Part shown: in pieces, positions 2,717 through 62,600 of the stretch | Numbering within the stretch: the first letter of the stretch is position 1 | Layout of the letters: every line of letters begins with the position of its first letter | From: Macrostomum lignano | Lineage: Eukaryota | Length of the DNA stretch: 64,000 bases | Assembly: GCA_002269645.1 (NCBI GenBank) | Contig: NIVC01001632.1 | Span: forward strand, 192,664 to 256,663 | Direction: 5' to 3' | Notes under the pieces: model-generated | The model's input: only the letters and a program-made list of their open reading frames with translations | What the model was told of the DNA's origin: nothing | Databases searched by the model: none | Program-made: the position numbers and the translations under genes

Positions 2717-10327
<7,611 letters not shown>

Positions 10328-10394
10328 CCTGCAGGAAAGGAGCGAAAAGTGCCGATACAAGAGCAGACGACGCTCAGCATTGTTAATCGACTGT

Positions 10395-10570
10395 CCTCCC
10401 TGTCACTCCACTGCCTCCCCGGTCACTCCACTGTCTTCCTGTCCCTCCACTGTCTTCCCTGTCACTCCACTGTCTTCCCTGTCACTCCACTGTCTTCCCT
10501 GTCACTTAACTGCCTTCCCTGTCACTCCACTGTGTTCCCTGTCACTCCACTGCCTTCCCTATCACTCCAG
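10395..10570. repeat. 20-bp CTGTCTTCCCTGTCACTCCA array in the 3' UTR
   Basis: About 8 copies between the stop codon and AATAAA. Confidence 0.9.
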
Positions 10571-11269: not shown

Positions 11270-12600
11270 AGACCATATTGGGCTAGTCTAGGTCATATAT
11301 GGGTAGCCTGGGTCATATTGGGGTAGTCTGGGTCATATATGGGTAGCCTGGGTCATATTGGGGTAGTCTGGGTCATATTGGGCTAGTCTAGGTCATATAT
11401 GGGTAGCCTGGGTCATATTGGGGTAGTCTGGGTCATATATGGGCAGCCTGGGTCATATTGGGGTAGCCTGGGTCATATTGAGGTAGTCTGGGTCATATAT
11501 GGGCAGCCTGGGTCATATTGGGGTAGCCTGGGTCATATTGAGGTAGTCTGGGTCATATATGGGTAGCCTGGGTCATATTGGGGTAGTCTGGGTCATATAT
11601 GGGTAGCCTGGGTCATATTGGGGTAGCCTGGGTCATATTGAGGTAGTCTGGGTCATATATGGGTAGCCTGGGTCATATTGGGGTAGTCTGGGTCATATAT
11701 GGGTAGCCTGGGTCATATTGGGGTAGCCTGGGTCATATTGAGGTAGTCTGGGTCATATATGGGTAGCCTGGGTCATATTGGGGTAGTCTGGGTCATATTG
11801 GGGTAGTCTGTGTCATATTGGGGTAGTCTGGGTCATATATGGGTAGCCTGGGTCATATTGGGGTAGTCTGGGTCATACACTATTGGGGTAGTCTGTGTCA
11901 TATTGGGGTAATCTGGGTCATATTTCGATAGTATGAGTCATACTGAGTTAGTCTAGGTCATATTGAAGTAGTCTAGGTCATATTGGGCTAGTCTGGGTCA
12001 TATTGGGCTAGTCTGGGTCATATTGGGGTAGTCTGGGTCATATTGGGATAATCTGGGTCATATTGAAGCAGTCTATGTCATATTGGGCTAGTCTGGGTCA
12101 TATTGGGCTAGTCTGGGTCATATTGAAGCAGTCTAGGTCATATTGGGCTAGTCTGGGTCATATTGAAGCAGTCTAGGTCATATTGGGCTAGTCTGGGTCA
12201 TATTGGGCTAGTCTGGGTCATATTGGGCTAGTCTGGGTCATATTGAAGCAGTCTAGGTTATATGGGTTAGTCTGGGTCATATGGGGTTAGTCTGGGTCAT
12301 ATGGGTTAGTCCGGGTCATATGGGTTAGTCTGGATCATATGGGTTAGTCTGGGTCATATTGGGCTAGTCTGGGTCATATTGGGCTAGTCTGGGTCATATT
12401 GGGCTAGTCTGGGTCATATTGGGCTAGTCTGGGTCATATTTGGCTAGTCTGGGTCATATTGGGATAGTCTGGGTCATATTGGGGTAGTCTGGGTCATATT
12501 GGGGTAGTCTGGGTCATATTGGGCTAGTCTGGGTCACATGGGCTAGTCTGGGTCATATTGGGCTAGTCTGGGTCATATCGGGCTAGTCTGGGTCATATGG
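11270..12600. repeat. 20-bp GGGTCATATTGGGGTAGTCT minisatellite
   Basis: About 65 copies with higher-order variant blocks. Confidence 0.97.
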
Positions 12601-13384: not shown

Positions 13385-13660
13385 TAAGGTCGTACACACC
13401 CGATGAGTCACTCGCGTCGCCCCAGAGTCGTCGCGGGTTACACAGGTAAAAAAGGAAAGAAGTGACTCTAGACGGCTCTACTAAAACGGCGAGATGTCGC
13501 GGTACAAGTCGCCATAAAGTCGTCAAAGAGTCGCCTAAGAGTCAATTTGAAGCGTTTTATTGTCTGCAACTCAGAAACGACTCTGGGGCGACGCAAGTGA
13601 CTCTGGGGCGACGCGTGACTCTGGGGCTGCAGAGTCGCTGTAGAGTCACTGAGTTGCATC
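13385..13660. mobile_element. Probable truncated MITE with internal inverted repeats
   Basis: GTCACTCGCGTCGCCCCAGAGTCG (13407-13430) pairs with CGACTCTGGGGCGACGCAAGTGAC (13578-13601) with 1 mismatch, and further tandem copies follow. The left end reads TAAGGTCGTACACAC. Confidence 0.5.
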
Positions 13661-13665
13661 TGAGT

Positions 13666-15765
13666 GCCAATCAAATCTCCAATCCCACCTGCCAATCAAA
13701 TCTCCAATCCCCACCTGCCAATCAAATCTCCAATCCCCACCTGCCAATCAAATCTCCAATCCCCACCTGCCAATCAAATCTCCAATCCCACCTGCCAATC
13801 AAATCTCCAATCCTACCTGCCAATCAAATCTCCAATCCCCACCTGCCAATCAAATCTCCAATCCTACCTGCCAATCAAATCTCCAATCCCCACCTGCCAA
13901 TCAAATCTCCAATCCTACCTGCCAATCAAATCTCCAATCCCACCTGCCAATCAAATCTCCAATCCTACCTGCCAATCAAATCTCCAATCCCCACCTGCCA
14001 ATCAAATCTCCAATCCTACCTGCCAATCAAATCTCCAATCCCCACCTGCCAATCAAATCTCCAATCCTACCTGCCAATCAAATCTCCAATCCCCACCTGC
14101 CAATCAAATCTCCAATCCCACCTGCCAATCAAATCTCCAATCCCCACCTGCCAATCAAATCTCCAATCCCACCTGCCAATCAAATCTCCAATCCCCACCT
14201 GCCAATCAAATCTCCAATCCCCACCTGCCAATCAAATCTCCAATCCCACCTGCCAATCAAATCTCCAATCCTACCTGCCAATCAAATCTCCAATCCCCAC
14301 CTGCCAATCAAATCTCCAATCCCACCTGCCAATCAAATCTCCAATCCCACCTGCCAATCAAATCTCCAATCCCACCTGCCAATCAAATCTCCAATCCCCA
14401 CCTGCCAATCAAATCTCCAATCCCCACCTGCCAATCAAATCTCCAATCCCCACCTGCCAATCAAATCTCCAATCCTACCTGCCAATCAAATCTCCAATCC
14501 CCACCTGCCAATCAAATCTCCAATCCCCACCTGCCAATCAAATCTCCAATCCCCACCTGCCAATCAAATCTCCAATCCCCACCTGCCAATCAAATCTCCA
14601 ATCCCCACCTGCCAATCAAATCTCCAATCAAATCTCCAATCCCCACCTGCCAATCAAATCTCCAATCCCCACCTGCCAATCAAATCTCCAATCCCCACCT
14701 GCCAATCAAATCTCCAATCCCCACCTGCCAATCAAATCTCCAATCAAATCTCCAATCCCCACCTGCCAATCAAATCTCCAATCCCCACCTGCCAATCAAA
14801 TCTCCAATCCCCACCTGCCAATCAAAGCTCCAATAAAATCTCCAATCAAATCTCCAATCCCCACCTGCCAATCAAATCTCCAATCCCCACCTGCCAATCA
14901 AATCTCCAATCCCACCTGCCAATCAAATCTCCAATCCCCACCTGCCAATCAAATCTCCAATCCCACATGCCAATCAAATCTCCAATCCCCACCTGCCAAT
15001 CAAATCTCCAATCCCCACCTGCCAATCAAAGCTCCAATAAAATCTCCAATCAAATCTCCAATCCCCACCTGCCAATCAAATCTCCAATCCCCACCTGCCA
15101 ATCAAATCTCCAATCCCACCTGCCAATCAAATCTCCAATCCCACCTGCCAATCAAATCTCCAATCCCCACCTGCCAATCAAATCTCCAATCCCCACCTGC
15201 CAATCAAATCTCCAATCCCCACCTGCCAATCAAATCTCCAATCCTACCTGCCAATCAAATCTCCAATCCCCACCTGCCAATCAAATCTCCAATCCCCACC
15301 TGCCAATCAAATCTCCAATCCCCACCTGCCAATCAAATCTCCAATCCTACCTGCCAATCAAATCTCCAATCCCCACCTGCCAATCAAATCTCCAATCCCC
15401 ACCTGCCAATCAAATCTCCAATCCCCACCTGCCAATCAAATCTCCAATCCCCACCTGCCAATCAAATCTCCAATCAAATCTCCAATCCCCACCTGCCAAT
15501 CAAATCTCCAATCCCCACCTGCCAATCAAAGCTCCAATCCCACCTGCCAATCAAATCTCCAATCCCCACCTGCCAATCGAATCTCCAATCCCCACCTGCC
15601 AATCAAAGCTCCAATAAAATCTCCAATCAAATCTCCAATCCCCACCTGCCAATCAAATCTCCAATCCCCACCTGCCAATCAAATCTCCAATCCCACCTGC
15701 CAATCAAATCTCTAATCCCACCTGCCAATCAAATCTCCAATCCCACCTGCCAATCAAAGCTTCAA
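13666..15765. repeat. 25/26-bp CCAATCAAATCTCCAATCCCCACCTG minisatellite
   Basis: About 80 copies; ORFs 13462..15780, 13664..14836 and 14967..15617 are artefacts. Confidence 0.98.
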
Positions 15766-15908
15766 TCCATAAGGCCATAACCTTTGTTCGTATGTTATAC
15801 AACTCAATTTAAGGGTTACACTAAACCTGGTAGCCTAATTAATGTTTATATAAGTTAAATCACGCCAGAAGTATAGTCAATTAATTTCTTAGACACCTGC
15901 GCAGCTCT

Positions 15909-16424
15909 CTACGCAATCCGAGCCAGAAGCAGATGGGCAGCCAATCCAGCAGCAATGCTAGCAGCAAGCCAGGACCGACTAATTCCATCAGCCGAGTTGC
16001 AGCCAGGGCCCACGCAGTAGCAAATCTCCTTGGTGGTGCCGGCTCCGTACATTGTGTGGCAGCCGGTGCCCATGCCAGGCGGTATCTCGGCGCAGTCCCG
16101 GGTAACCACTGTGGCAATCAGTGTGGCCGCCTCCCTCATGCCACCGCCCTGCTTGTCAATGTGATAGCGCCAGGCCTTAGTTGTCATCTTCACGCACCCG
16201 TTCAGGTCTCTATTCCTGCACTTGGTGTGCCGGTTGCCAGTGAGGGATAAGCTAGCGTTGCAGAAGCGCTCGGCTAGGGAGGCGTCTTTAGAATTGCGGC
16301 TATTCAATTCGAAATAATTGTCGCAGATGACGCAATCGGCGACGGCGAGGCTGGGCAACGGGCACTGGGCGACCAGTAGGGCGATGAATAGCGGGATCGC
16401 CAGGCTGGCACTGGGCAGTGGCAT
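15909..16424 (-). CDS. Intronless Ly6/uPAR three-finger GPI-anchored protein (quiver-like family), 171 aa
   Basis: Signal peptide MPLPSASLAIPLFIALLVAQ; 10-Cys pattern CVIC...C...C...GCVK...RDC...GC...CYC...CN; small-residue omega site NSADG and a hydrophobic tail. An alternative in-frame ATG is at 16451. Confidence 0.9.
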   Translation of the reverse strand: MPLPSASLAIPLFIALLVAQCPLPSLAVADCVICDNYFELNSRNSKDASLAERFCNASLSLTGNRHTKCRNRDLNGCVKMTTKAWRYHIDKQGGGMREAATLIATVVTRDCAEIPPGMGTGCHTMYGAGTTKEICYCVGPGCNSADGISRSWLAASIAAGLAAHLLLARIA

Positions 16425-16519
16425 CTTTGCTTTGCTGTGCGTCATGCACACGAGTGATTGTGTATGTGAGTGCGTGTCTAATAGCGACTGTTGCGCTGGT
16501 GTATGCCGGATATCATGTT

Positions 16520-17150
16520 AGGTTTAGCATCAGGGGGCGCTTACTTTAGCATCAGGGGTGCCTACTCTAATATCAATTTTAGCATTAGGGACGCCTACTT
16601 TAGTATCAATTTTAGCATCAAGGGTGCCTACTTCACTATCACTTTTAGCATCAAGGGTGCCTACTTCACTATCACTTTTAGCATCAAGGGTGCCTACTTC
16701 ACTATCACTTTTAGCATCAAGGGTGCCTACTTCACTATCACTTTTAGCATCAAGGGTGCCTACTTCACTATCACTTTTAGCATCAAGGGTGCCTACTTCA
16801 CTATCACTTTTAGCATCAAGGGTGCCTACTTCACTATCACTTTTAGCATCAAGGGTGCCTACTTCACTATCACTTTTAGCATCAAGGGTGCCTACTTCAC
16901 TATCACTTTTAGCATCAAGGGTGCCTACTTCACTATCACTTTTAGCATCAAGGGTGCCTACTTCACTATCACTTTTAGCATCAAGGGTGCCTACTTCACT
17001 ATCACTTTTAGCATCAAGGGTGCCTACTTCACTATCACTTTTAGCATCAAGGGTGCCTACTTCACTATCACTTTTAGCATCAAGGGTGCCTACTTCACTA
17101 TCACTTTTAGCATCAAGGGTGCCTACTTCACTATCACTTTTAGTATCAAA
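16520..17150. repeat. 33-bp AGCATCAAGGGTGCCTACTTCACTATCACTTTT minisatellite
   Basis: About 16 perfect copies plus a degenerate lead-in; ORFs 16491..17198 and 16558..17307 are artefacts. Confidence 0.97.
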
Positions 17151-17904
17151 GTGCAGAAACTTAGTTTTTTATATTCTACGCGAAGTTACTTTGACTGAGT
17201 TTAATCTAAATCGCAGTGTCACTGTTAATATATCTGTTAGACTAGGCGCATATTTAAGCATCATAAATTTGCTCAGCTACAACGCTTTAGACTGCTTGTG
17301 CAAGTGAAACTTTAAGTCAGTGATTTAGAGAGCCGTAGGGCACGCCAAGGATAGCACTGTGTGACTGACTGACCACAGAAGGGAGTTCAATCGTTTTTGA
17401 CCCCCCCCCCTTTCATTTTTGCCCAATGGCCGAACGAGAGAGATGGATAGAGAGTAGCAATAGTCAAATAGAAAGCGAGAGAAAAGACAAAAAGAAACAG
17501 GGCCGGAGAGGAGAAGTCGAAAAATGAGCAGCGACCCCACTTCAGACTGCTGCGAAGCATTCAATCATCCCGACTGAAGAGACGGAAGCAGCGGCGGCAA
17601 GGCGGGGAACTAATAATATAAAGCCGCTAAGGAAGAAAAGGAAAGCACGGGAAAAAGAGGCTGCAAAAGAAGCAGAGATCCTGACAGAAACGGCCACCTG
17701 AACGCAGCTGTGTGAGTTCAATTACTATTTCACTGCATCTAGTTGCCACCCGCTCTAATATATCCATCACCTTGGTCCGGTCGCAGGTGAACCGGTTCGC
17801 TAAGACTCTGAAACGAGGATATTAACTGTGACGATCATGAGTGCCCGGCTGATAGGTAAAAGTGACTGATGACTAAGCAGTTCTGGCAATACACTACTAG
17901 TACG

Positions 17905-18205
17905 TAGGTGAGGTGGGTGCAGGAATGGGGTGTGCTTTAGGGCAGGGAGTGAGGTGGGTGCAATAATGGGGTGTGCTTTACGGCAGGGAGTGAGGTGGGT
18001 GCAGGAATGGGGTGTGCTTTAGGGCAGGGAGTGAGGTGGGTGCAGGAATGGGGTGTGCTTTAGGGCAGGGAGTGAGGTGGGTGCAAGAATGGGGTGTGCT
18101 TTATGGCAGGGAGTGAGGTGGGTGCAGGAACGGGTGTGCTTTAAGGCAGGGAGTGAGGTGGGTGCAGGAATGGGGTGCGCTTTATGGCAGGGAGTGAGGT
18201 GAGGT
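17905..18205. repeat. About 41-bp G-rich array GGGCAGGGAGTGAGGTGGGTGCAGGAATGGGGTGTGCTTTA
   Basis: About 7 copies. Confidence 0.93.
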
Positions 18206-18521
18206 AGAAAAGTCCTCCCAACAACCAACTAAGAATGAAAAAGAGCAACAAGAAAAACATGGGAGATAAGCGAGCATTATTGCAGACAGGGGCGCGCCCA
18301 GACAAGCAGTGAATATAAATAGATAGAGACAGCAAGCGAGAGATGTTCAATAAAGATTTAGCCGCTAGACCCGTGAAATTGAGTTTCCGCTAAGATGCGT
18401 CGACTCTGCACCCAGGGCTAACAAAGTTTCCCATATAGGGGCGAGATTTCGCTAAGCTTTGTGACAAACTAAACTTAGCCCCAAAAGCAGATACAGACTT
18501 TTAGTTTTGTATTATTCTCAG

Positions 18522-19626
18522 AGCAAAGCCATACACTCGTATGATCTGCATGACAACAAATTTGCAGTGATTGTTCTGGCGTACACGCTGACGCAACAAG
18601 TGAGAGGAGGAGTGGAGACTGATATCAACTGCAGCAGTGAGTGAAGAGCTTTGAAGAGCGCCCACTTTAGCACGAGGGCCCATACTTATGTATCAAATCT
18701 AGGTTTAGGTTCTACTTAGGGATCGGGCGCCTACTTTAGGATCAGGATGTCTACTTTAGGATCAGGATGTCTACTTTAGGATCAGGGTGTCTACTTTAGG
18801 ATCAGGATGTCTACTTTAGGATCAGGATGTCTACTTTAGGATCAGGATGTCTACTTTAGAATCGGGGTGATTACTGAAGTATCAGTGGTGATTACTAAAG
18901 TATCAGGGGTGATCACTAAAGTATCAGTGGTGATTACTTAAGTATCAGGAGTCATTATTAAGGCATCAGGGGTGATTACTTAAGTATCAGGGGTGATTAC
19001 TAAAGTATCAGGGATGCATCTTTAGCATTCAAATAGCTGGACATACTCGATGAACCACAGACCAATTCCAGTATCAGTATTACACTACTCAATCCCCTGC
19101 ATCCAGAAAAAGTATTCAACTGCATCCAGTGCTCAACAGACAGCAGCGATGCCGGGGCCAAAGCGTGCAGAGATCCATTTAATCCAACTCTGAGGCGAGA
19201 AGTTCACAATTTGCGCAAATGGAAAGGCAACGACGAAATTAGTGGCAAAGCGCTGCTGGCCAGGTACAATATCAGCACCACACTATGCGACACTTTCTGC
19301 GTCAAATGGGTTAGGGCGACCCGGTTAGGTGAGCAATAAAAGACAATAGACGATTTCTCTAAGTGTACTGTGCGCATAGAAACCAACCCCAATGAATAAT
19401 TTCAGACCAGGCTATCAGCATAATTCGCACCTGTTCGACTAAGATGAACATTCGATTTAATCAAAACTTGCCAGTGTGCATAAGTGAATCGCGTACAGGA
19501 AGTGGAGTGCTGTGCTTTTGTAAGGATGCCTTGTGCAATACAGCTGGCAGCCTGTATGGTGGCAGACTATGGCCAACTGTTTTAGTTGCTATGGCACTCT
19601 TGCTAGCACTAAGTAGCATGAGGTGA
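18522..19626 (+). CDS. qvr: quiver/sleepless-like Ly6 GPI-anchored protein (5' start unresolved)
   Basis: Exons (about 18505 or 18522)-18636, 19107-19328, 19406-19626 with GT-AG and phase-1 joins give ...FAVIVLAYTLTQQVRGGVETDINCSKKVFNCIQCSTDSSDAGAKACRDPFNP...LCDTFCVKWVRATRLDQAISIIRTCSTKMNIRFNQNLPVCISESRTGSGVLCFCKDALCNTAGS...LLLALSSMR. This is collinear with recalled Drosophila QVR (CYEC, [34 protein letters not shown]). Confidence 0.85.
18715..19022. repeat. 20/21-bp AGGATCAGGATGTCTACTTT array (qvr intron)
   Basis: About 14 degenerate copies; shares a core with the 33-bp array at 16520. Confidence 0.9.
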
Positions 19627-21834
19627 AGCAGCAAAATAGCTTTCTTTCTTCAATTAAATACAATACATTAATTTTACAAAATCATTTAAAATTCCTGCTT
19701 ATGCTGATTTTTTCATATTTTTCAGTAATCAATTTAAGCAGCTTTGCATACAGTGAAATTCTGTAAACCTGCAATTGGTCAACAGTGATTTCAGTTTACA
19801 ACTGGGCACACAAGAGACAGTAGAGACAAGAGTGCAAATGATCAAGTCTGCTAGCTGCCTGCCTAGTTGTGCACACAGAACAGAAAGATTGAAAGTGATT
19901 GATAGAAGTCATTAGGTATATTACTCTATATATATCAGTCAAAATTGACATCTGAGTATACTCAGACTTCTGTGTAGCATTTTAATACAGGTATTTAAGA
20001 AAAAAAGAAAAAAACTATGTATAAATTTACTAATATTGGCAACTAATAAAAATGAAGAATAGCAAAATGCCTACTATTAAGTAGAAAAAAGATATTAAAA
20101 AATTAAGAATTATAACTATATCACCTGGATTAGGTATCTGATAGAAGATAGATATTAGACTATGGAATAAAACCAAATAGCAAACCATTTTAACAGTTGA
20201 ATTGCACATTTTATGATTGATAAACATACTTTTCAAGCATATAAATTCATTGTAATATACTTGTAAAAATACATTGCTTAAGATTTTCATACTTAAAGAT
20301 AGGACAAAATGATTTTTTTATCCAATTTGATTTGAATATCTAATAGAACTGATTTGAATACCAAACAACAATGAAAATGAATATTTCATTCAACAATATA
20401 CCAACTTTACTACCTATTAGTCACTTGTCAGTAGTGCTAATTGATAGTTGAAAGAATTCTTTCTAAATAAATTGACCTATCAAATTAACTAAAAATGTGA
20501 GCTGATTTTCATTTTTTTATGAATGCTCTATTCACTGTTCTATTTTCTTGTAAAAACTATCACACAGGTAAATGCTTTGGCAAAGCCATGAATTGCAATG
20601 ACTAAACCTCTGCAGAAATGTCTAGCTAGAAGCATATGGTCAACCAATAGGCCTGCATCTTCTTGTCTTATAAAATGTGCCTAGACCAAATGTCCAACCA
20701 ACCCTTCTAAGTTTATGGTAATTAGCACCCCTGAATCCATGTTCCATAAACTTGATTTTTAATGCCTCACTTCTTCTAAAGCTTTAAAGTCTCCCTAAAG
20801 CCGTGGTATGCAATCTAAGCACATGCTCACAATTGCTTAAGCACCCAGCTTTTCCTCGAGATGTGCTATATGTTGCCCTATCTTTAATTTCCTCCCTCTT
20901 TTGTAAGCCATAAGCCCACAACCCCTAACACTCTCAACTCATCAAACATAAACTTCTTAGTCCTTAATTCCCTAATTCCTATTTATTTCTAATTTTTCCC
21001 TTAATTCATGAACCAATACTCAATTTTATACCAATAATTAGCTTTTAAGTTAACATGACTATTTTGTTTAGATTATCAACTTTCTGATTCTGATTTAAAC
21101 CAAAAATTAGGTCAAATTGATTTGATTTCAAATAATTGTCCCATCTTTAGTCATACTATAGCTAGTTATTAAGCTTGAAAGATTTTAACCTTCAAATGAA
21201 ATTTTGGGATGCATTAGACCCTATAATAATTTTCTATATATTTTTTATAGAAAATTTCTGTTATTATAGCCAATCCCATTGAGGGTTTAAATGATAACAA
21301 TGAAAAAATGACTAAAACATAAGAAGATAAGAAGATAAAAAGAAGATAATCTACTTATAAACAAATGATTTATATATATAGAAAAAGTTTAACTAGGCCT
21401 AATAATAACATTTTCATCAAATAGGTTAAATTGTAAAATGGTTCAAAAAGGCAACTAGTTAAATAAATTGTTGTTATCTAATAATAAATTTTTAAATGAG
21501 TATGATAAATACTATAACAATAATTATTAGGCCTAGCATATAAATATTTATCAAATGAAATATTTTCAGTTTATTCTAAAAAAATTCTATTTAGGTCAAG
21601 TTGTCTCATTTATATCTATATCATTGCATTGAAAAACAAGAATATTTAATTCTATAAATAGGATGGTCTACTGAATTCTTTTTTTCTCTATTTATTTTAT
21701 TCAATGTATCAATCAAACAATGAGTTTGTTAAAAGAATTTTTTTAAAGTAACAATATCAATTATTTTATTATACACTAAACTTTTATACTTAGCAACCAT
21801 TTTTGCTAATAAATAAAATGATAATGGGGCACAT

Positions 21835-28689: not shown

Positions 28690-30054
28690 GTGGAATCGAT
28701 CTCGCCAACCTTCAACTACAGTATGCGGGATGTTCTGCAGACAATGCCAGCTCTGTGCTCCGTCGGCATTGCGATCTGCAGTGCCAGCGTTGTGCTCAAC
28801 ATTTGGATTTTCTTCGTACTGAGAAACTTGCGAACCGCCTCTTCATCTGGAGACTCGGGCAGAGGCTACAACTTGACGCTGATTCGGCACCTGCTACTCA
28901 CTGACGTCATCACCGCGGTGTTGGTGGTCACAGATTTGGTACTGAAAGCGCAGGGCGTAGAAACTTCGGCACCGAGACTTCCCTCGCCACCTAAGAGTTT
29001 TTTTCCGGACCTAAACAGCACAACTACTGGCCGGCCGTGGCTCCCATCTTTGCCTTCGTCATACGCCCTGCTTCATTCGCCTCTGCGGCCACTTCTGCCT
29101 CCTACACCTTCGTCGCTGACCAACAAACCGTACAAAGGCTTCAGGCCGATGGCTGGCTACAACTGCTTCCGTTGCTTCACCAGCCAGAGTCTGTACAGCT
29201 CGCACGCTCTGACCCTGATGGCGCTGACTCTGATTGCTATTGACCTGTACATTTTCGTCATCCGAGCTCTGTCCTATCAAAGCGCGTTTTTTGTCCGGTG
29301 CCTGACAAGGCTGCTGCTTGTCAGCTGGGCAATCTGCATCGGTCTGACGGTTTTACCAATAGCCTATCATGCAGCCGTCACGGCCAGTCTGCCACCCCTT
29401 AATTTGACAACTGAGCAGCAGGAATCGCCGATTATATATTACTACTGTCGCTTCAAGCCGGATCTGATGGATCGGTTTTGCTGCGTCTGTCATCTGAGCG
29501 CAGACTTCTACAACTTGCAGGTTATTCTGGCCGTGTTCCTCGTCTCGTGTTGCATCGTGACATTCTGCTATTCGCGCATCGTGCTCACGATTTGTCGCCT
29601 AGCGGCGTCGGCACCCGGCCAGGCTCCGACTTCAATAGCGACAGCGGCTCGCCAAAATGTACGCGGCGTGGCCACTTCCGTCGGTCTGCTGCTGCTGTTC
29701 TATGCGCTCTTCCTGCCTTACTTTGCGCTCGTGCTGAAAACAAACATGATGGTGTTTGTGAACAGATCCGAGGCTCAAATTATGACGAACGAACATCTGA
29801 GCGAATACTTCGAAGTTGTCATGGTAACGTACACACTATTCAACCCACTGGTGTATGCGTGCCGTCTGCGCGCAATCAGGCGTCGATCATCGCGCACGCT
29901 GGCGGTGGCGATGCTCGGCCGGCGACGAACTCGAGACTCGGCGGCCCAGCACTTGGTGCCGTGCTCCAGCAATCACCATCTGCTTTCGGCCAGGTATGAA
30001 TTGGCATGTTCTACCTTAGTTACTGAGTTAGAACTAGGGGCTATCTACGATTGA
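28690..30054 (+). CDS. Orphan rhodopsin-like (class A) GPCR, single coding exon
   Basis: Seven hydrophobic segments; TM1 SVVLN, TM2 HLLLTD, TM3 IAIDLY (DRY position), TM5 FCYSRI, TM6 LFLPY, TM7 NPLVY. The listed start is GTG; the first ATG is at 28723, and AG acceptors at 28663 and 28688 allow an upstream exon. Confidence 0.88.
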   Translation: MESISPTFNYSMRDVLQTMPALCSVGIAICSASVVLNIWIFFVLRNLRTASSSGDSGRGYNLTLIRHLLLTDVITAVLVVTDLVLKAQGVETSAPRLPSPPKSFFPDLNSTTTGRPWLPSLPSSYALLHSPLRPLLPPTPSSLTNKPYKGFRPMAGYNCFRCFTSQSLYSSHALTLMALTLIAIDLYIFVIRALSYQSAFFVRCLTRLLLVSWAICIGLTVLPIAYHAAVTASLPPLNLTTEQQESPIIYYYCRFKPDLMDRFCCVCHLSADFYNLQVILAVFLVSCCIVTFCYSRIVLTICRLAASAPGQAPTSIATAARQNVRGVATSVGLLLLFYALFLPYFALVLKTNMMVFVNRSEAQIMTNEHLSEYFEVVMVTYTLFNPLVYACRLRAIRRRSSRTLAVAMLGRRRTRDSAAQHLVPCSSNHHLLSARYELACSTLVTELELGAIYD

Positions 30055-31705: not shown

Positions 31706-32644
31706 GAACCCACCTAGTTGCTAAGCGTTGATGAAGCCGCCAGACAGGCAGTGTGACTTAAAAAGAATACCAATAGATAAATTCAAACCCTTAGCAGCAG
31801 GCTGTCTGCAAGATACATCACTTATCAGCCTGTTAATCAGTGCAATGCACGGTGGCTTTGCCTGATTTCCTTTTCGTTACCGCTGATGTTTGGGCGCCGG
31901 ATGTGTGCCTTTTTGTTTGCAGGAGAAAATTTTTCTTTAAAACTTTAAAACTACTTGCAACTCACAGCATGCAATGCCTATAGAAGCTGGTTCAGCCAAT
32001 AAAGTACTGCCTGGACACAAGGGCACCAGTGCACCTGTACCTAAGTGCTGTAGGCATAAGTACATCAGGCGTGATGCAGCAAGGCAGAGTTTGATTAACA
32101 ATTTCCGCTAGGTTGAGCTTTCCGAACTTGATGAAGCAAATTGTCGGAAAATATGCGGCGCTATGAACTGACGACTGATGAATACGATGCCTTACTTATC
32201 TAGCCGGTACATGACGGATCGATGTGAGGGTAGACATCATGAGCACTCAGAAACTGATAATTAATAGCATGATCACTCAGTAGGTGATCTGTCAACTGGC
32301 ACAGGAGGCGCAGAGTGATGCGACCCCTCTAAATTAAAAGGGCAAAAACTACGCACAGAGACAGATTTCGAAACCAAGAGAAACTTCGATCAAAGGATCA
32401 AAGGGAGAGGAAGGCCAGCCATTCGGTGCAGCAAACTAATCGATTGGGGAAGCTCCGCTTAGTCTTCTGGGTGCTGAATATTTTGCATAGAAATTACAAT
32501 CGGGTCACGCCAGGTGATCTTTCCTCTTCTGAGCAACTCAACTGAGCTTACTGCTGTTGCTCTCTGCGTGCATGCAGTCTAAATGCTAAACTGCAAGTGC
32601 CGTATCAGTGCCGCCTGCGTGCCAATGCATGGGGAAATTGCTTA

Positions 32645-33378
<734 letters not shown>

Positions 33379-33789
33379 CGCCGGGATTGACACAAGAAAC
33401 ATGAGCACCTCAGAGCATGATATTTTATTACATGACTCTCTTCACTGCCATTTAATTTCAGAGGCTAGCGGTCAATTCAGCACCCATGTGCCACGCATAC
33501 AGCTGGACTTACATAGTGCTGGATGCTTGGGGAACCTCGGACTCAGCCACAAGCGCACAAAGTGCAGCAGTCTGGGAACCATAGAACGCCTGCAGATTTT
33601 TCGCCCTGTGCGTCAGTTCTCTTGGCTTTCTACTGCACAATGTTTTTTGTCCTCCTAGTTTTCTGATTTCATGTACTTAACAACTGAGCAGCAGGTCTCC
33701 GTGAACCTGTTTCTACATGAACGTTTAAATTAATTTGTTATGAAAAATTTCATTCGATATTCACTTATTTTGGTTACGGTTCGAATTCA

Positions 33790-59614: not shown

Positions 59615-62600
59615 TCAGACAAAGCTTGACGTAGCGTAGGGAGTCCGGCAGATGGGGCTGCCGACGTGCGCACCGCTGGCAGCGTCTCGCCCTGCCGCGG
59701 CGAGAGCCGTGTCAGACGCGAGCACCGCGTAGCCCTGCCTGTCAATGGCCGGAGCCGCGGCAGCTGAGGTGTACCGACTCTCCTCCATGGCGCCGGCGGC
59801 TGTCGCGTCTCCAGAAATGGTGGCGTAGAATTTGCGCGACATCCGGTCGGAGGAGGTCAACGCCGCCGCGGCCGATGTCGCCGCAGCTGCCGATGGGCTC
59901 GACGTCGCAGTCGTCTCGTAGCCATTGAACGCCTTGAGCGTCAGGCTTCGCTGATGCGTGGCCGCCAGACGCCCTCCGCCGTCTGGTGTGGAATTCGCTG
60001 ACGTCTGGCGCTGTGGCGACGTCAAATAGCCGGAGCTGGAAAACTTGCGCTGCCGCTTCAGGCAGGTGCCGCCCGGACTGCGGGCCCTAACGTTGTCGAT
60101 CACCAGCGTGGCCGAGCGGCAGCCGTCAGTCAGGATGTCGGGGAATCGATAGGCGCCTTCCGACAAGTCGGCGCTGGGCTCGTCCGCGGTCTGCCGCTGA
60201 ATAAGAAGTACATCGGGGTGCTTTGACATGAGCTGATCCTTTGACATGAGCTGATCCTTTGACATGAGCTGATGCTTTGACATGAGCTGATGCTTTGACA
60301 TGAGCTGATGCTTTGACATGAGCTGATGCTTTGACATGAGCTGATGCTTTGACATGAGCTGATGCTTTGACATGAGCTGATGCTTTGACATGAGCTGATG
60401 CTTTGACATGAGCTGATGCTTTGACATGAGCTGATGCTTTGACATGAGCTGATGCTTTGGCATGAGCTGATGCTATCACTCCTTACAGACATGCGAGCAG
60501 TCTCTAGAGACCTTTTCTCATCTCAACCCCGAGCCCCGGTAGTCATGGCAACTCACCGGATCAGAATTCGCCCTGTCGTACCAGGTGGCACCCCGGTTGG
60601 TTCTTACTGCCGTTCTCGAGGTCTCCTGGCGACCTGCCCATGTTTGAAAATGCAGGGGTTGATTTATATGTACTTCAAGTGGTGGGTCCTCTGGCATCAG
60701 AAAGCGAGTTAATAATACACACAGGACAAGCGGCTCACCCCAGGCGTGCATGTACAGCAGCACCGCCAGCAGCGCTACAAAGATCACGAAGACCACAGCG
60801 GCCAGGCACAGCAGCAGCAGCAGGTTGCGGTCCGCCTGGGCTCGTTGCGTCCGACCGCCCGCCGCTCCGCCGTCTTCGCCGCCGTGGGCGTCTTTGCCGA
60901 TGGTAACGCCACCGGGACCGCTGCCAGCGACACCGGAGCGAGCTGCGTGCGCCGCGTCGACAATGTGCACTAAGGTGTCGTGGCGGCTCTCCAGCGGCGG
61001 CTGGCCGCAGTCCCTGGCCAGCAGGGTCAGCCGAAAGCGCCGACCAACTCCGCGTTTGAACGGCCGAATCAGCGTCAACATGCCGTGCGTCCGGTCGATG
61101 CTGAAATGCGTACCGCCCCCGTCAGCTTCAATGGAACGCTGAGCTCCTTCTCCTCAAGGCTGTAGACGATGGTTCCATTGTCGCCAGCGTCGTCATCGCG
61201 TCCTCGCGCCTGCGGCAAAAGCTGTGTGCCGGCCGGGCTGGCGGCGGACAAATTGTGCACCCGGCTGAGCCCCTCAAGTATCGGCCAGTTGTCATTGACG
61301 TCCAGCAGCGCGATGGTGACCTGGGCGGAAGCGAAAGCGTTCGCGCCGACCGCCTGAACCTCCAGCAGGAGCGTCTCCTGCCGCTCCCGGTCGAAGTTAC
61401 CTTGGCCCATCAGCTGGTTGCCCTCGAAGGAAAAGTGGATGTCGGTGGACGACTGGCGGTTGCCGACTTTGTAGCGAATCTCGGCGTTGGCGCCCGAATC
61501 GGCGTCCGTGGCGGTCACGGCGCCGATGAAGCGCCGGCTATAGTTAGCGCCGAAATCTTCGACAATGTGAAAGCTGTACACCGGAGGCTGGAACACCGGC
61601 GGCGAGTCGTCGACATCCTCGATAACAACCTCAACGGAGGCGGTAGCCGAGAGAGAGTCCGCCCTGCCATCGTTGTCGCTCACAATCACAGCAAAGTTGT
61701 AGCGGCTGCGCTCCTCGCGGTCGAAGGTGACCCGGGCTCGAATCTCTGCTCGGCCACGACCGGTAGACTGGATGCTGAAGAACTGCCGCCCAGCCGCGTC
61801 CAAGTCAAAGCGCAGCGGCGCCGTCGGGTCGTCCGGATCGTCGGCACGGACGTGCCCAACAAAGGCGTCCAGCGGGTTGTTCTCGGACAGCCGGTAACTG
61901 TAGAAGCTCCGCTCCAGGTGTGGTGGATTGTCGTTCACGTCGGTGATCCTGACCGTCAGCTGGTGAGGAGTGATCTTCGGCGGCGCACCGCGGTCGGTAC
62001 AGCTAATGTCAACGGTGACCTTCCCGGCTGGTGAGGCCTCCCGATCGAAGGTGACGCCGTTCGGCTTGCGCAGCTCGTAGATGGTCATCCGCCGGGCTTG
62101 GTCGCCGGCTGGGACACTCGGCAACGGCACGCGTACCAACCGGAATCGATCGGACGGCGTCGCCTGGCATTCCACGGTGCCGTTGTCGCCAGCGTCAGGA
62201 TCGAGGCCATCACCTGGCCAGCGTCAGCTCTCTACCGTCATTCTCTGTCAAGCTGACGCCGGCGTCGCCGTCGACCCCGCCGATCTGGATAGTCGGGTAG
62301 TTGTCGTTGCAGTCCGTGAGTCGGACCGGCACCTCGATCTCGGATCGCAGCTGGCCGGAGTCCTCGGCCACCACCGGGATGAAGAACGACCTCTCTGCCT
62401 GGTTCTCGTAGTCCAGCAGTCTGTTCTGGAGCAGGAAGTCGCCGGATATGTAAAACGTGGTGGCGGCTTCTTTACCAGCGGTGGGCGCGATAGAATAGAC
62501 GATGCGCTCGTTCAGATCGGGGTCCACTGCTTGCAGTCGCATGAGACAGCGGTGCAGCCGGTCGCACTCCGAGATCGTCACAGTGGCAGGTGCCTTCGGC

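Follow-up and report, generated by a model that had tools for sequence, protein, structure and literature searches.

A divergent pair of Ly6/uPAR-type genes in Macrostomum lignano that includes an unannotated quiver-like gene

We analyzed a 64-kb stretch of DNA (hereafter, the window) from scaffold NIVC01001632.1 of Macrostomum lignano (assembly GCA_002269645.1) and described in it a divergent pair of genes for small cysteine-rich proteins of the Ly6/uPAR (LU) type. The minus-strand gene belongs to the Pfam family DUF5746. The plus-strand gene, for which NCBI calls no gene either on this scaffold or on its duplicate, is likely, judging by sequence, a co-ortholog of arthropod quiver/sleepless (qvr). 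According to the interpretation that we favor and regard as rather probable, both genes encode Ly6/uPAR proteins with glycosylphosphatidylinositol (GPI)-type signals, the plus gene is an unannotated quiver-like co-ortholog, and the pair was duplicated as a unit. The initial annotation of this DNA had correctly assigned it to a probable flatworm and had located both genes properly, with the minus-strand open reading frame (ORF) at 15909-16451 and the plus-strand exons spliced in frame; its remark that the plus gene is nearly invisible agrees with the missing NCBI gene call. Two further loci of the same genome were used for comparison, namely a collinear duplicate of the window locus on scaffold NIVC01000852.1 (L001), which is 91-96% identical, and a diverged paralogous locus on NIVC01000037.1 (L002). 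Positions 5909-26442 of the window are identical to the 20.5-kb record locus around the minus gene; the window as a whole corresponds to about 192663-256662 of NIVC01001632.1.

Three exons of the plus-strand gene can be read directly from the window. Exon 1, as modeled in the initial annotation (18529..18636), encodes the rest of a putative signal peptide and then ...ETDINCS, carrying an extra N-terminal cysteine (C41, 18625-18627) two residues ahead of a phase-1 intron; its donor is CA/GTGAGT at 18636/18637. Exon 2 (19107..19328, acceptor CCAG/A, donor TTAG/GTGAGC) encodes the first half of the LU domain, from CIQC through CRDPF, a 21-residue loop insertion and a NIS sequon to CDTFCVKWVRATRL. 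Exon 3 (19406..19626, acceptor TTTCAG/A) encodes the second half of the domain (IIRTCST ... VCISESRTGSGVLCFCKDALCN) and a GPI-type signal, consisting of TAGSLYGG and a hydrophobic tail, and ends with the stop codon at 19624-19626. A possible polyadenylation signal, ATTAAA, was read from the sequence at 19653..19658 on the same strand, 27 nt after the stop codon. Exon 3 is 98.6% identical in L001 and 46% identical to the paralog at L002, and it is the best-matching portion of the gene when compared with arthropod QVR. The spliced product contains all the motifs reported in the initial annotation (NCS-x4-CIQC, CRDPF, CVKW, RTC, VCISE and CFC...CN).

Both predicted junctions, 18636/19107 and 19328/19406, are canonical GT-AG and join the exons in frame. 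They recur at the same position and in the same phase in the L002 paralog, whose introns are unrelated to those in the window. We also mapped exactly the exons of Drosophila innubila qvr, which has four coding exons and intron phases 1,1,1; its introns are located within the signal peptide, two residues after the extra N-terminal cysteine, and ten residues after the CVK cysteine. The second of these positions is common to fly qvr (ECQ/T), the paralog (SCQ/K) and the window gene (NCS/K). It is this recurrence in the paralog and in D. innubila qvr that makes the two junctions well supported. The plus gene most likely comprises four coding exons with every intron in phase 1. These shared intron positions back the gene model more than they back orthology, as they may be general to LU genes.

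The three-exon model stands in its junctions but is incomplete at the 5' end, since exon 1 has an open frame from 18507 onward but no ATG in it. We propose that the start codon is supplied by a first coding mini-exon at 17837..17855 on the plus strand (ATGAGTGCCCGGCTGATAG/gtaaaag), by analogy with the paralog and the fly gene; it would encode MSARLI plus 1 nt, end in phase 1 and be spliced to 18529. Of the ATG-plus-donor candidates, it alone is unchanged between the two scaffold copies and fits the shared acceptor 18528/18529, and it conforms to the four-exon, all-phase-1 structure of the paralog and of D. innubila qvr; an alternative donor is present at 17861. Other ATG-plus-donor candidates, located within a 41-bp minisatellite (e.g. 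18184-18198), were rejected as not conserved in L001. The spliced leader of M. lignano ends in ATG (PMC8629364), and trans-splicing of the leader at ctcag/AGC (18521/18522), with its ATG in frame, is a possible alternative start for the window copy. We gave this alternative a lower rank because the CAG is lost in L001.

By comparing profile scores, we found that the affinity of the plus protein is to qvr in particular. A hidden Markov model (HMM) for which only 102 arthropod qvr proteins were used gives 46.7 bits for the window plus protein and 59.3 bits for the L002 paralog (P0132), compared with 17.1 bits for the DUF5746 protein P0002 and 2.1 bits for the window minus protein; every DUF5746 protein scores at most 17 bits (17.1 for P0002). 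The generic Pfam QVR model (PF17064) gives a different ranking, with 32.9 bits for P0132, 31.4 for P0002, 36.9 for the D. ananassae QVR and 42.1 for the Tribolium QVR. In passing from the generic to the qvr-only model, the score of the plus protein increases from 23.6 to 46.7 bits and that of P0002 decreases from 31.4 to 17.1 bits. The Pfam QVR family is broad, and its score says little on orthology. A BLASTP comparison of the plus protein with Tribolium QVR gives 45 bits (E=2e-11) with 28% identity over the whole domain, a resemblance far beyond chance. The profile scores support a particular affinity of the plus gene to arthropod qvr over the generic Ly6/QVR family.

In a neighbor-joining tree confined to Macrostomum quiver-like proteins, arthropod qvr and DUF5746, leaving out bou, crok, cold, rtv, twit and other Ly6 subfamilies, the three Macrostomum quiver-like sequences (99% bootstrap) are sister to arthropod qvr (100%) and stand apart from DUF5746. 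The initial annotation had proposed a hidden quiver/sleepless ortholog. The gene is indeed unannotated, and it is qvr-like by HMM, BLASTP and intron positions; it is not the sole ortholog, as a less diverged paralog is already named 'Protein quiver'.

The arrangement of cysteines adds to this picture. An extra N-terminal cysteine precedes the first canonical cysteine by seven residues in the fly (ECQTRSIYC), the paralog (SCQKKGISC) and the window protein (NCSKKVFNC), so that the claim of a QVR-like extra cysteine ahead of CxxC is confirmed with identical spacing in all three. Together with the ten canonical LU cysteines, the plus protein therefore has 11. Ahead of VK, the arthropod consensus is CNGCCVK, and the corresponding segments are CDTFCVK in the window protein and CDGLCVK in the paralog; the missing second cysteine of the arthropod 'CC' is likely the one presumed to pair with the extra N-terminal cysteine. 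The flatworm quiver-like proteins thus keep the extra cysteine (C41 in the window protein, C39 in the paralog) without its presumed partner; the odd 11th cysteine might then be free or take part in an intermolecular bond.

The related copy at L002 helps to define what is new in the window. All introns of its four-exon model are in phase 1, and the translation departs from UniProt A0A1I8I5A0 ('Protein quiver') by a single mismatch; the window plus protein is 37% identical to it (112 bits). On these comparisons, the M. lignano genome has at least two quiver-like loci, and the window gene is the more derived one. What was known already is the related copy in UniProt; what is new is the unannotated and rather diverged copy in the window. 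A second UniProt entry, A0A1I8I2R7, is the A0A1I8I5A0 protein with a truncated and different C-terminus (CNAGERRP) and no GPI signal. At L002 (7571-9333 on the minus strand and 10001-10531 on the plus strand), the NCBI annotation of NIVC01000037.1 likewise includes no quiver-like gene, and the UniProt product comes from another annotation.

Several observations weigh against the reading of the plus gene as a quiver co-ortholog. In the comparison with the Pfam QVR family suggested by the initial annotation, HMMER gave the plus protein 23.6 bits (23.2 for the L001 copy), under the gathering threshold of 27.3. The protein contains 11 cysteines compared with 12 in fly QVR, the second cysteine of 'CC' being absent; a 21-residue insertion follows CRDPF in the region of the first loop; and loop 2, longer by one residue, shows no conservation with fly QVR at its tip. 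The tree is not proof of orthology, and the flatworm clade could yet be sister to several insect Ly6 subfamilies. The AlphaFold model of the paralog, built with 60 aligned sequences, is unusable (predicted local distance difference test, pLDDT, of 52). At the 5' end, the two donors of the mini-exon are both imperfect, and L001 has lost the ctcag acceptor found at 18521. Finally, a single-sequence search of a collection of 5.8 billion proteins returned no protein that matches the plus gene, which may therefore be weakly expressed or silent. Relatives were retrieved from this collection only by a profile that also contained the paralog and a fly QVR probe; the probe served as bait only, and all comparisons were made on database-returned sequences.

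Some of these points would be expected if the plus gene were a decaying or silent duplicate drifting toward a pseudogene, with the better-conserved copy on NIVC01000037.1 as the working quiver-like gene. The absence of the gene from annotation and of a matching protein from any source searched, the frame of exon 1 without ATG, the loss of the clean CAG acceptor in L001, the score under the Pfam QVR threshold while the paralog passes, the odd number of cysteines and the 21-residue loop insertion are all in line with this idea. A comparison of the two scaffold copies bears on it from both sides. The window and L001 versions differ by 7 synonymous and 14 non-synonymous substitutions, which speaks for decay, and by 12 amino acids. 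But these differences spare the reading frame, which is open through all exons in both copies, as well as all 11 cysteines (none is among the 12 replaced residues) and the splice sites flanking exons 2 and 3. The NG86 ratio of non-synonymous to synonymous divergence (dN/dS) between window and L001 is 0.42 for the plus gene, i.e. below 1, and 0.16 for the minus gene, and a conserved ATG mini-exon with the right phase exists. This points to moderate constraint on the plus gene, on small counts. We consider a silent or decaying copy unlikely; the plus gene looks real.

Both products are probably small secreted Ly6/uPAR proteins with a GPI anchor. Each begins and ends with a hydrophobic segment and has small residues following CN, the N-terminus of the plus protein depending on the proposed first exon. 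The description of the pair as three-finger GPI proteins in the initial annotation agrees with the LU cysteine order, which is present in both; the signal peptides and GPI tails are putative, read from the hydrophobic ends.

By analogy with the fly protein, a function can be outlined for the plus gene. What is known comes from fly QVR/SSS alone, which uses loop 2 to bind Shaker and nicotinic receptors (PMC4735452) and controls both excitability and sleep (PMC6600238). The plus protein would enter the endoplasmic reticulum, gain a GPI anchor near N161-S165 and act as a tethered accessory subunit at the neuronal surface, where, like fly QVR, it might bind Shaker-type K+ channels and/or nicotinic receptors via its middle finger, loop 2. 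Conservation of these channel targets is an inference of moderate strength only, because the base of loop 2 is conserved but its tip differs and is one residue longer.

The same loop bears on another explanation, in which the plus protein is a genuine QVR-family Ly6 protein without Quiver function, taking part, for example, in epithelial or septate-junction assembly (as in Boudin, Crooked and Coiled) or in some other role at the cell surface. The loop 2 tip, which fly QVR needs for binding to Shaker and to the nicotinic acetylcholine receptor (PMC4735452), is not conserved and has one extra residue, other Drosophila LU proteins have non-neuronal roles (PMC6600238), and the broad Pfam QVR model is passed also by P0002, an unrelated DUF5746 protein. 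However, similarity is highest to qvr specifically, as the score doubles from the generic to the qvr-only model, and the extra N-terminal cysteine and the motif ES-x-G-x-G-x-x-CFC-x-x-D-x-CN are held in common with QVR. We regard a role other than that of Quiver as a minor but appreciable possibility.

The partner of this gene on the minus strand is a single-exon DUF5746-family gene of the Ly6-like type (15909..16445, 178 aa), identified by its ORF (15909-16451) and by Pfam. Its start codon is the ATG at 16445, with an alternative ATG at 16424, and its stop codon lies at 15909-15911. The gene is identical to one called by NCBI on NIVC01001632.1 and annotated as a hypothetical protein, and its product is 99% identical to PAA75969.1 and to the NCBI 'hypothetical protein BOX15_Mlig024112g4'. 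The minus protein matches Pfam DUF5746 (PF19017) with 150.1 bits (E=7.7e-44), passing the gathering threshold of 23.6 bits; against Pfam QVR it scores 25.2 bits, just under the threshold of 27.3. It has a signal-peptide-like N-terminus, ten domain cysteines (C38, 41, 62, 76, 84, 118, 129, 142, 144 and 149, followed by N150) that run from CxxC to CYC...CN, and a hydrophobic GPI-type C-terminal tail. Its AlphaFold model has a pLDDT of 62.5, and the top Foldseek matches of this model in PDB are weak (E 0.04-0.6) and all three-finger: the TGF-beta receptor II ectodomain, C4.4A, Lypd6b, GPIHBP1 and uPAR.

Relatives of the minus protein are few. Searched exhaustively with HMMER, 1.84 billion representative proteins yielded only ten at E<=0.001, of which all named matches are from flatworms, the two remaining being unnamed Logan entries. 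The named relatives come from Macrostomum, the cestodes Spirometra and Mesocestoides, the trematodes Echinostoma, Calicophoron and Fasciolopsis, and the monogenean Cichlidogyrus. An alignment of the minus protein with nine family members (cestodes, trematodes, monogenean and Logan) contains 11 invariant and 17 nearly invariant columns, which display a ten-cysteine LU-like pattern, the motifs CxxC(D/N)NY, GCxKxxTKxYR, VVTRxCxxIP and CYCxGxxCN, and a hydrophobic C-terminal tail. As the DUF5746 domain is encoded on one exon also in all three parasite genomes examined, the intronless state of the minus gene is a family trait and not a sign of recent retroposition. A literature search on DUF5746 gave nothing relevant.

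Some observations concern the annotation and architecture of individual family members. In the NCBI record, the minus gene has a coding sequence labeled partial, which begins just after a genomic TGCATG (16443-16451, minus strand). These six bases are also the last six of the M. lignano spliced leader (...TTGCATG); possibly, trimming of the leader cut away a real genomic ATG and so produced an artefactual partial start. The Fasciolopsis DUF5746 protein (P0129/P0130 set) is named 'Palmitoyltransferase' at its source, which looks like a mis-annotation, and the Cichlidogyrus relative has two tandem DUF5746-type domains.

The initial annotation had regarded the minus gene as a divergent intronless paralog of the plus gene. 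Orientation and absence of introns hold, but it is not a close paralog and belongs to the separate family DUF5746. The two window proteins have no detectable pairwise similarity (E=0.15), and their families are related at the profile level only (hhalign 87%, E=4e-6). As judged from these profiles, the term 'paralog' holds in the superfamily sense only.

The head-to-head layout recurs in L001 and L002. The L002 partners are 53% (DUF5746) and 37% (quiver-like) identical to those of the window. Within the Macrostomum lineage the two genes were duplicated together, and the head-to-head layout is therefore old. Divergent orientation and a distance below about 1 kb between start sites were taken here as the definition of a bidirectional pair. 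In L002 the start codons are 0.69 kb apart. In the window the distance is 2.08 kb from the ATG of the minus gene to exon 1 and 1.39 kb from ATG to ATG with the proposed mini-exon, the latter spacer including 0.6 kb of a variable 33-bp minisatellite. A shared bidirectional promoter for the quiver-like and DUF5746 genes, as suggested in the initial annotation, is possible.

Whether the layout has a regulatory meaning at all is, in our estimate, evenly balanced. Segmental or whole-genome duplication could simply have copied an old neighborhood in which either gene has a promoter of its own. In accordance with this explanation, the window and L002 spacers have only chance-level 9-10-mers in common and no conserved non-coding block, the 1.39-kb window spacer is invaded by the variable minisatellite, and no quiver-like neighbor was found beside the DUF5746 genes of three neodermatans (Calicophoron, Mesocestoides and Echinostoma) in flanks of at most 10 kb. 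Against it, the orientation and the close spacing (0.69 kb in L002) have persisted while the proteins diverged to 37-53% identity. A stronger proposal, which we consider quite improbable, is that the quiver-like and DUF5746 genes form a conserved co-regulated macrostomid module under one short bidirectional promoter, with products acting on the same channel complexes and DUF5746 being a flatworm-specific partner or offshoot of the quiver lineage. If true, it would give the orphan family DUF5746 its first functional lead. No papers mentioning the locus tags were found in a literature search.

Minisatellites are abundant at the locus (12000-12598, 13665-15768, 16545-17149, 17908-18201 and 18711-19013, with units of 20, 26, 33, 41 and 20/21 bp, respectively), and the lengths of the arrays are strongly unequal between the window and L001. 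Three of the arrays detected with Tandem Repeats Finder lie between or within the two genes. The 33-bp array (16545..17149, ~18 copies) occupies 0.6 kb between the divergent genes, and neither its copy number nor its sequence is the same on L001. The 41-bp array (17908..18201, 7 copies) is located within the proposed first intron; its counterpart stretch on L001 is far longer, matching over about 8609-7745. The 20/21-bp array (18711..19013) lies within the intron between 18636 and 19107, and its unit is related to that of the 33-bp intergenic array; this intron (18637-19106) measures 470 nt in the window and 1168 nt on L001. A 772-aa 'ORF' at 13462-15780 on the plus strand was rejected as a gene, being a product of the 26-bp minisatellite with about 80 copies.

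A scan of the 64-kb window revealed no further LU-domain genes. Cysteine-pattern matches at about 32586-33658 and about 2269-2934 were dismissed as spurious, since short-period repeats produce Cys/Ser/Leu-rich pseudo-ORFs there (CLSVCLSV..., CSCACSCAC...). Among other ORFs of the window, a long one at 28690-30054 (plus strand) matches the rhodopsin family of G protein-coupled receptors (7tm_1, E=3e-10) and is probably an intronless or single-large-exon receptor gene; the quiver-like gene lies about 9 kb upstream of it. Two cadherin domains (84 bits) are encoded by the ORF at 61075-62175 (minus strand), probably a single exon of a larger cadherin gene that extends beyond the window. The ORF at 5568-6416 (minus strand) matches the collagen triple-helix repeat (40 bits) and may be a collagen-like exon or a mere Gly-rich repeat.

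The results add a missing gene model to the annotation of M. lignano, and the repeated pairing with a quiver-like gene provides the first contextual clue for DUF5746, an uncharacterized flatworm family. The three intron positions and the extra N-terminal cysteine common to the flatworm and insects suggest that the qvr lineage is older than the split of Spiralia and Ecdysozoa. M. lignano is amenable to RNAi and transgenesis, so its qvr-like genes could be used for asking whether the control of excitability, or of rest, by Ly6 proteins is ancient. This is a modest addition that leaves current views unchanged, a related copy being already named 'Protein quiver' in UniProt.

Among known systems, the minus protein resembles the Pfam DUF5746 proteins of cestodes, trematodes and monogeneans, with which it has in common CxxC(D/N)NY, GCxKxxTKxYR, VV(T/S)RxCxxIP, GGA and CYCxGxxCN. 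The Macrostomum DUF5746 proteins are shorter, with a much shorter first loop, and have a plain signal peptide, whereas those of the parasites have a long N-terminal extension with a membrane-spanning stretch.

A literature search for Ly6 or quiver in Macrostomum or planarians gave nothing relevant. Mammalian prototoxins of the Lynx1/Ly6h type are GPI-anchored proteins with a single LU domain that modulate nicotinic receptors (PMC6600238, PMC4735452). No relation to them is detectable by sequence, and a profile search of PDB sequences gave no match; they are likely a functional analogy to the plus protein.

One of the closest counterparts of the window gene is the M. lignano 'Protein quiver' (A0A1I8I5A0, A0A1I8I2R7; NIVC01000037.1), which has the same four-exon phase-1 structure, the same 11-cysteine pattern and a head-to-head DUF5746 neighbor, as at the window locus. 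The paralog is nearer to arthropod qvr than the window copy (59 vs 47 bits on the qvr-only HMM) and passes the Pfam QVR threshold (32.9 bits), below which the window copy falls. Further differences are a shorter loop insertion and a first exon that includes a normal ATG along with a portion of the signal peptide.

Compared with fly QUIVER/SLEEPLESS, the window protein has 'CDTFC' (11 cysteines) in place of 'CNGCC' (12 cysteines) and a 21-residue insertion between CxDPF and the next cysteine. The fly N-glycosylation site NYT corresponds to NPT in the window protein, where a NIS sequon occurs further on. Loop 2 of the plus protein is one residue longer with another tip, but its base (CVKxVR ... 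RTC) is conserved. Fly QVR and its arthropod orthologs combine a signal peptide, a single LU domain and a GPI-type tail, the arrangement predicted for the plus protein. Intron positions coincide as well, with three phase-1 introns separating four coding exons in the fly gene and in the window model alike, the first window intron being inferred. The motifs of the fly and arthropod proteins are collinear with those of the plus protein throughout, from the extra cysteine, CxxC and CxDPF through CVKxVR and RxC(T/S)(S/T) to VCxxES.G.G..CFC..D.CN.

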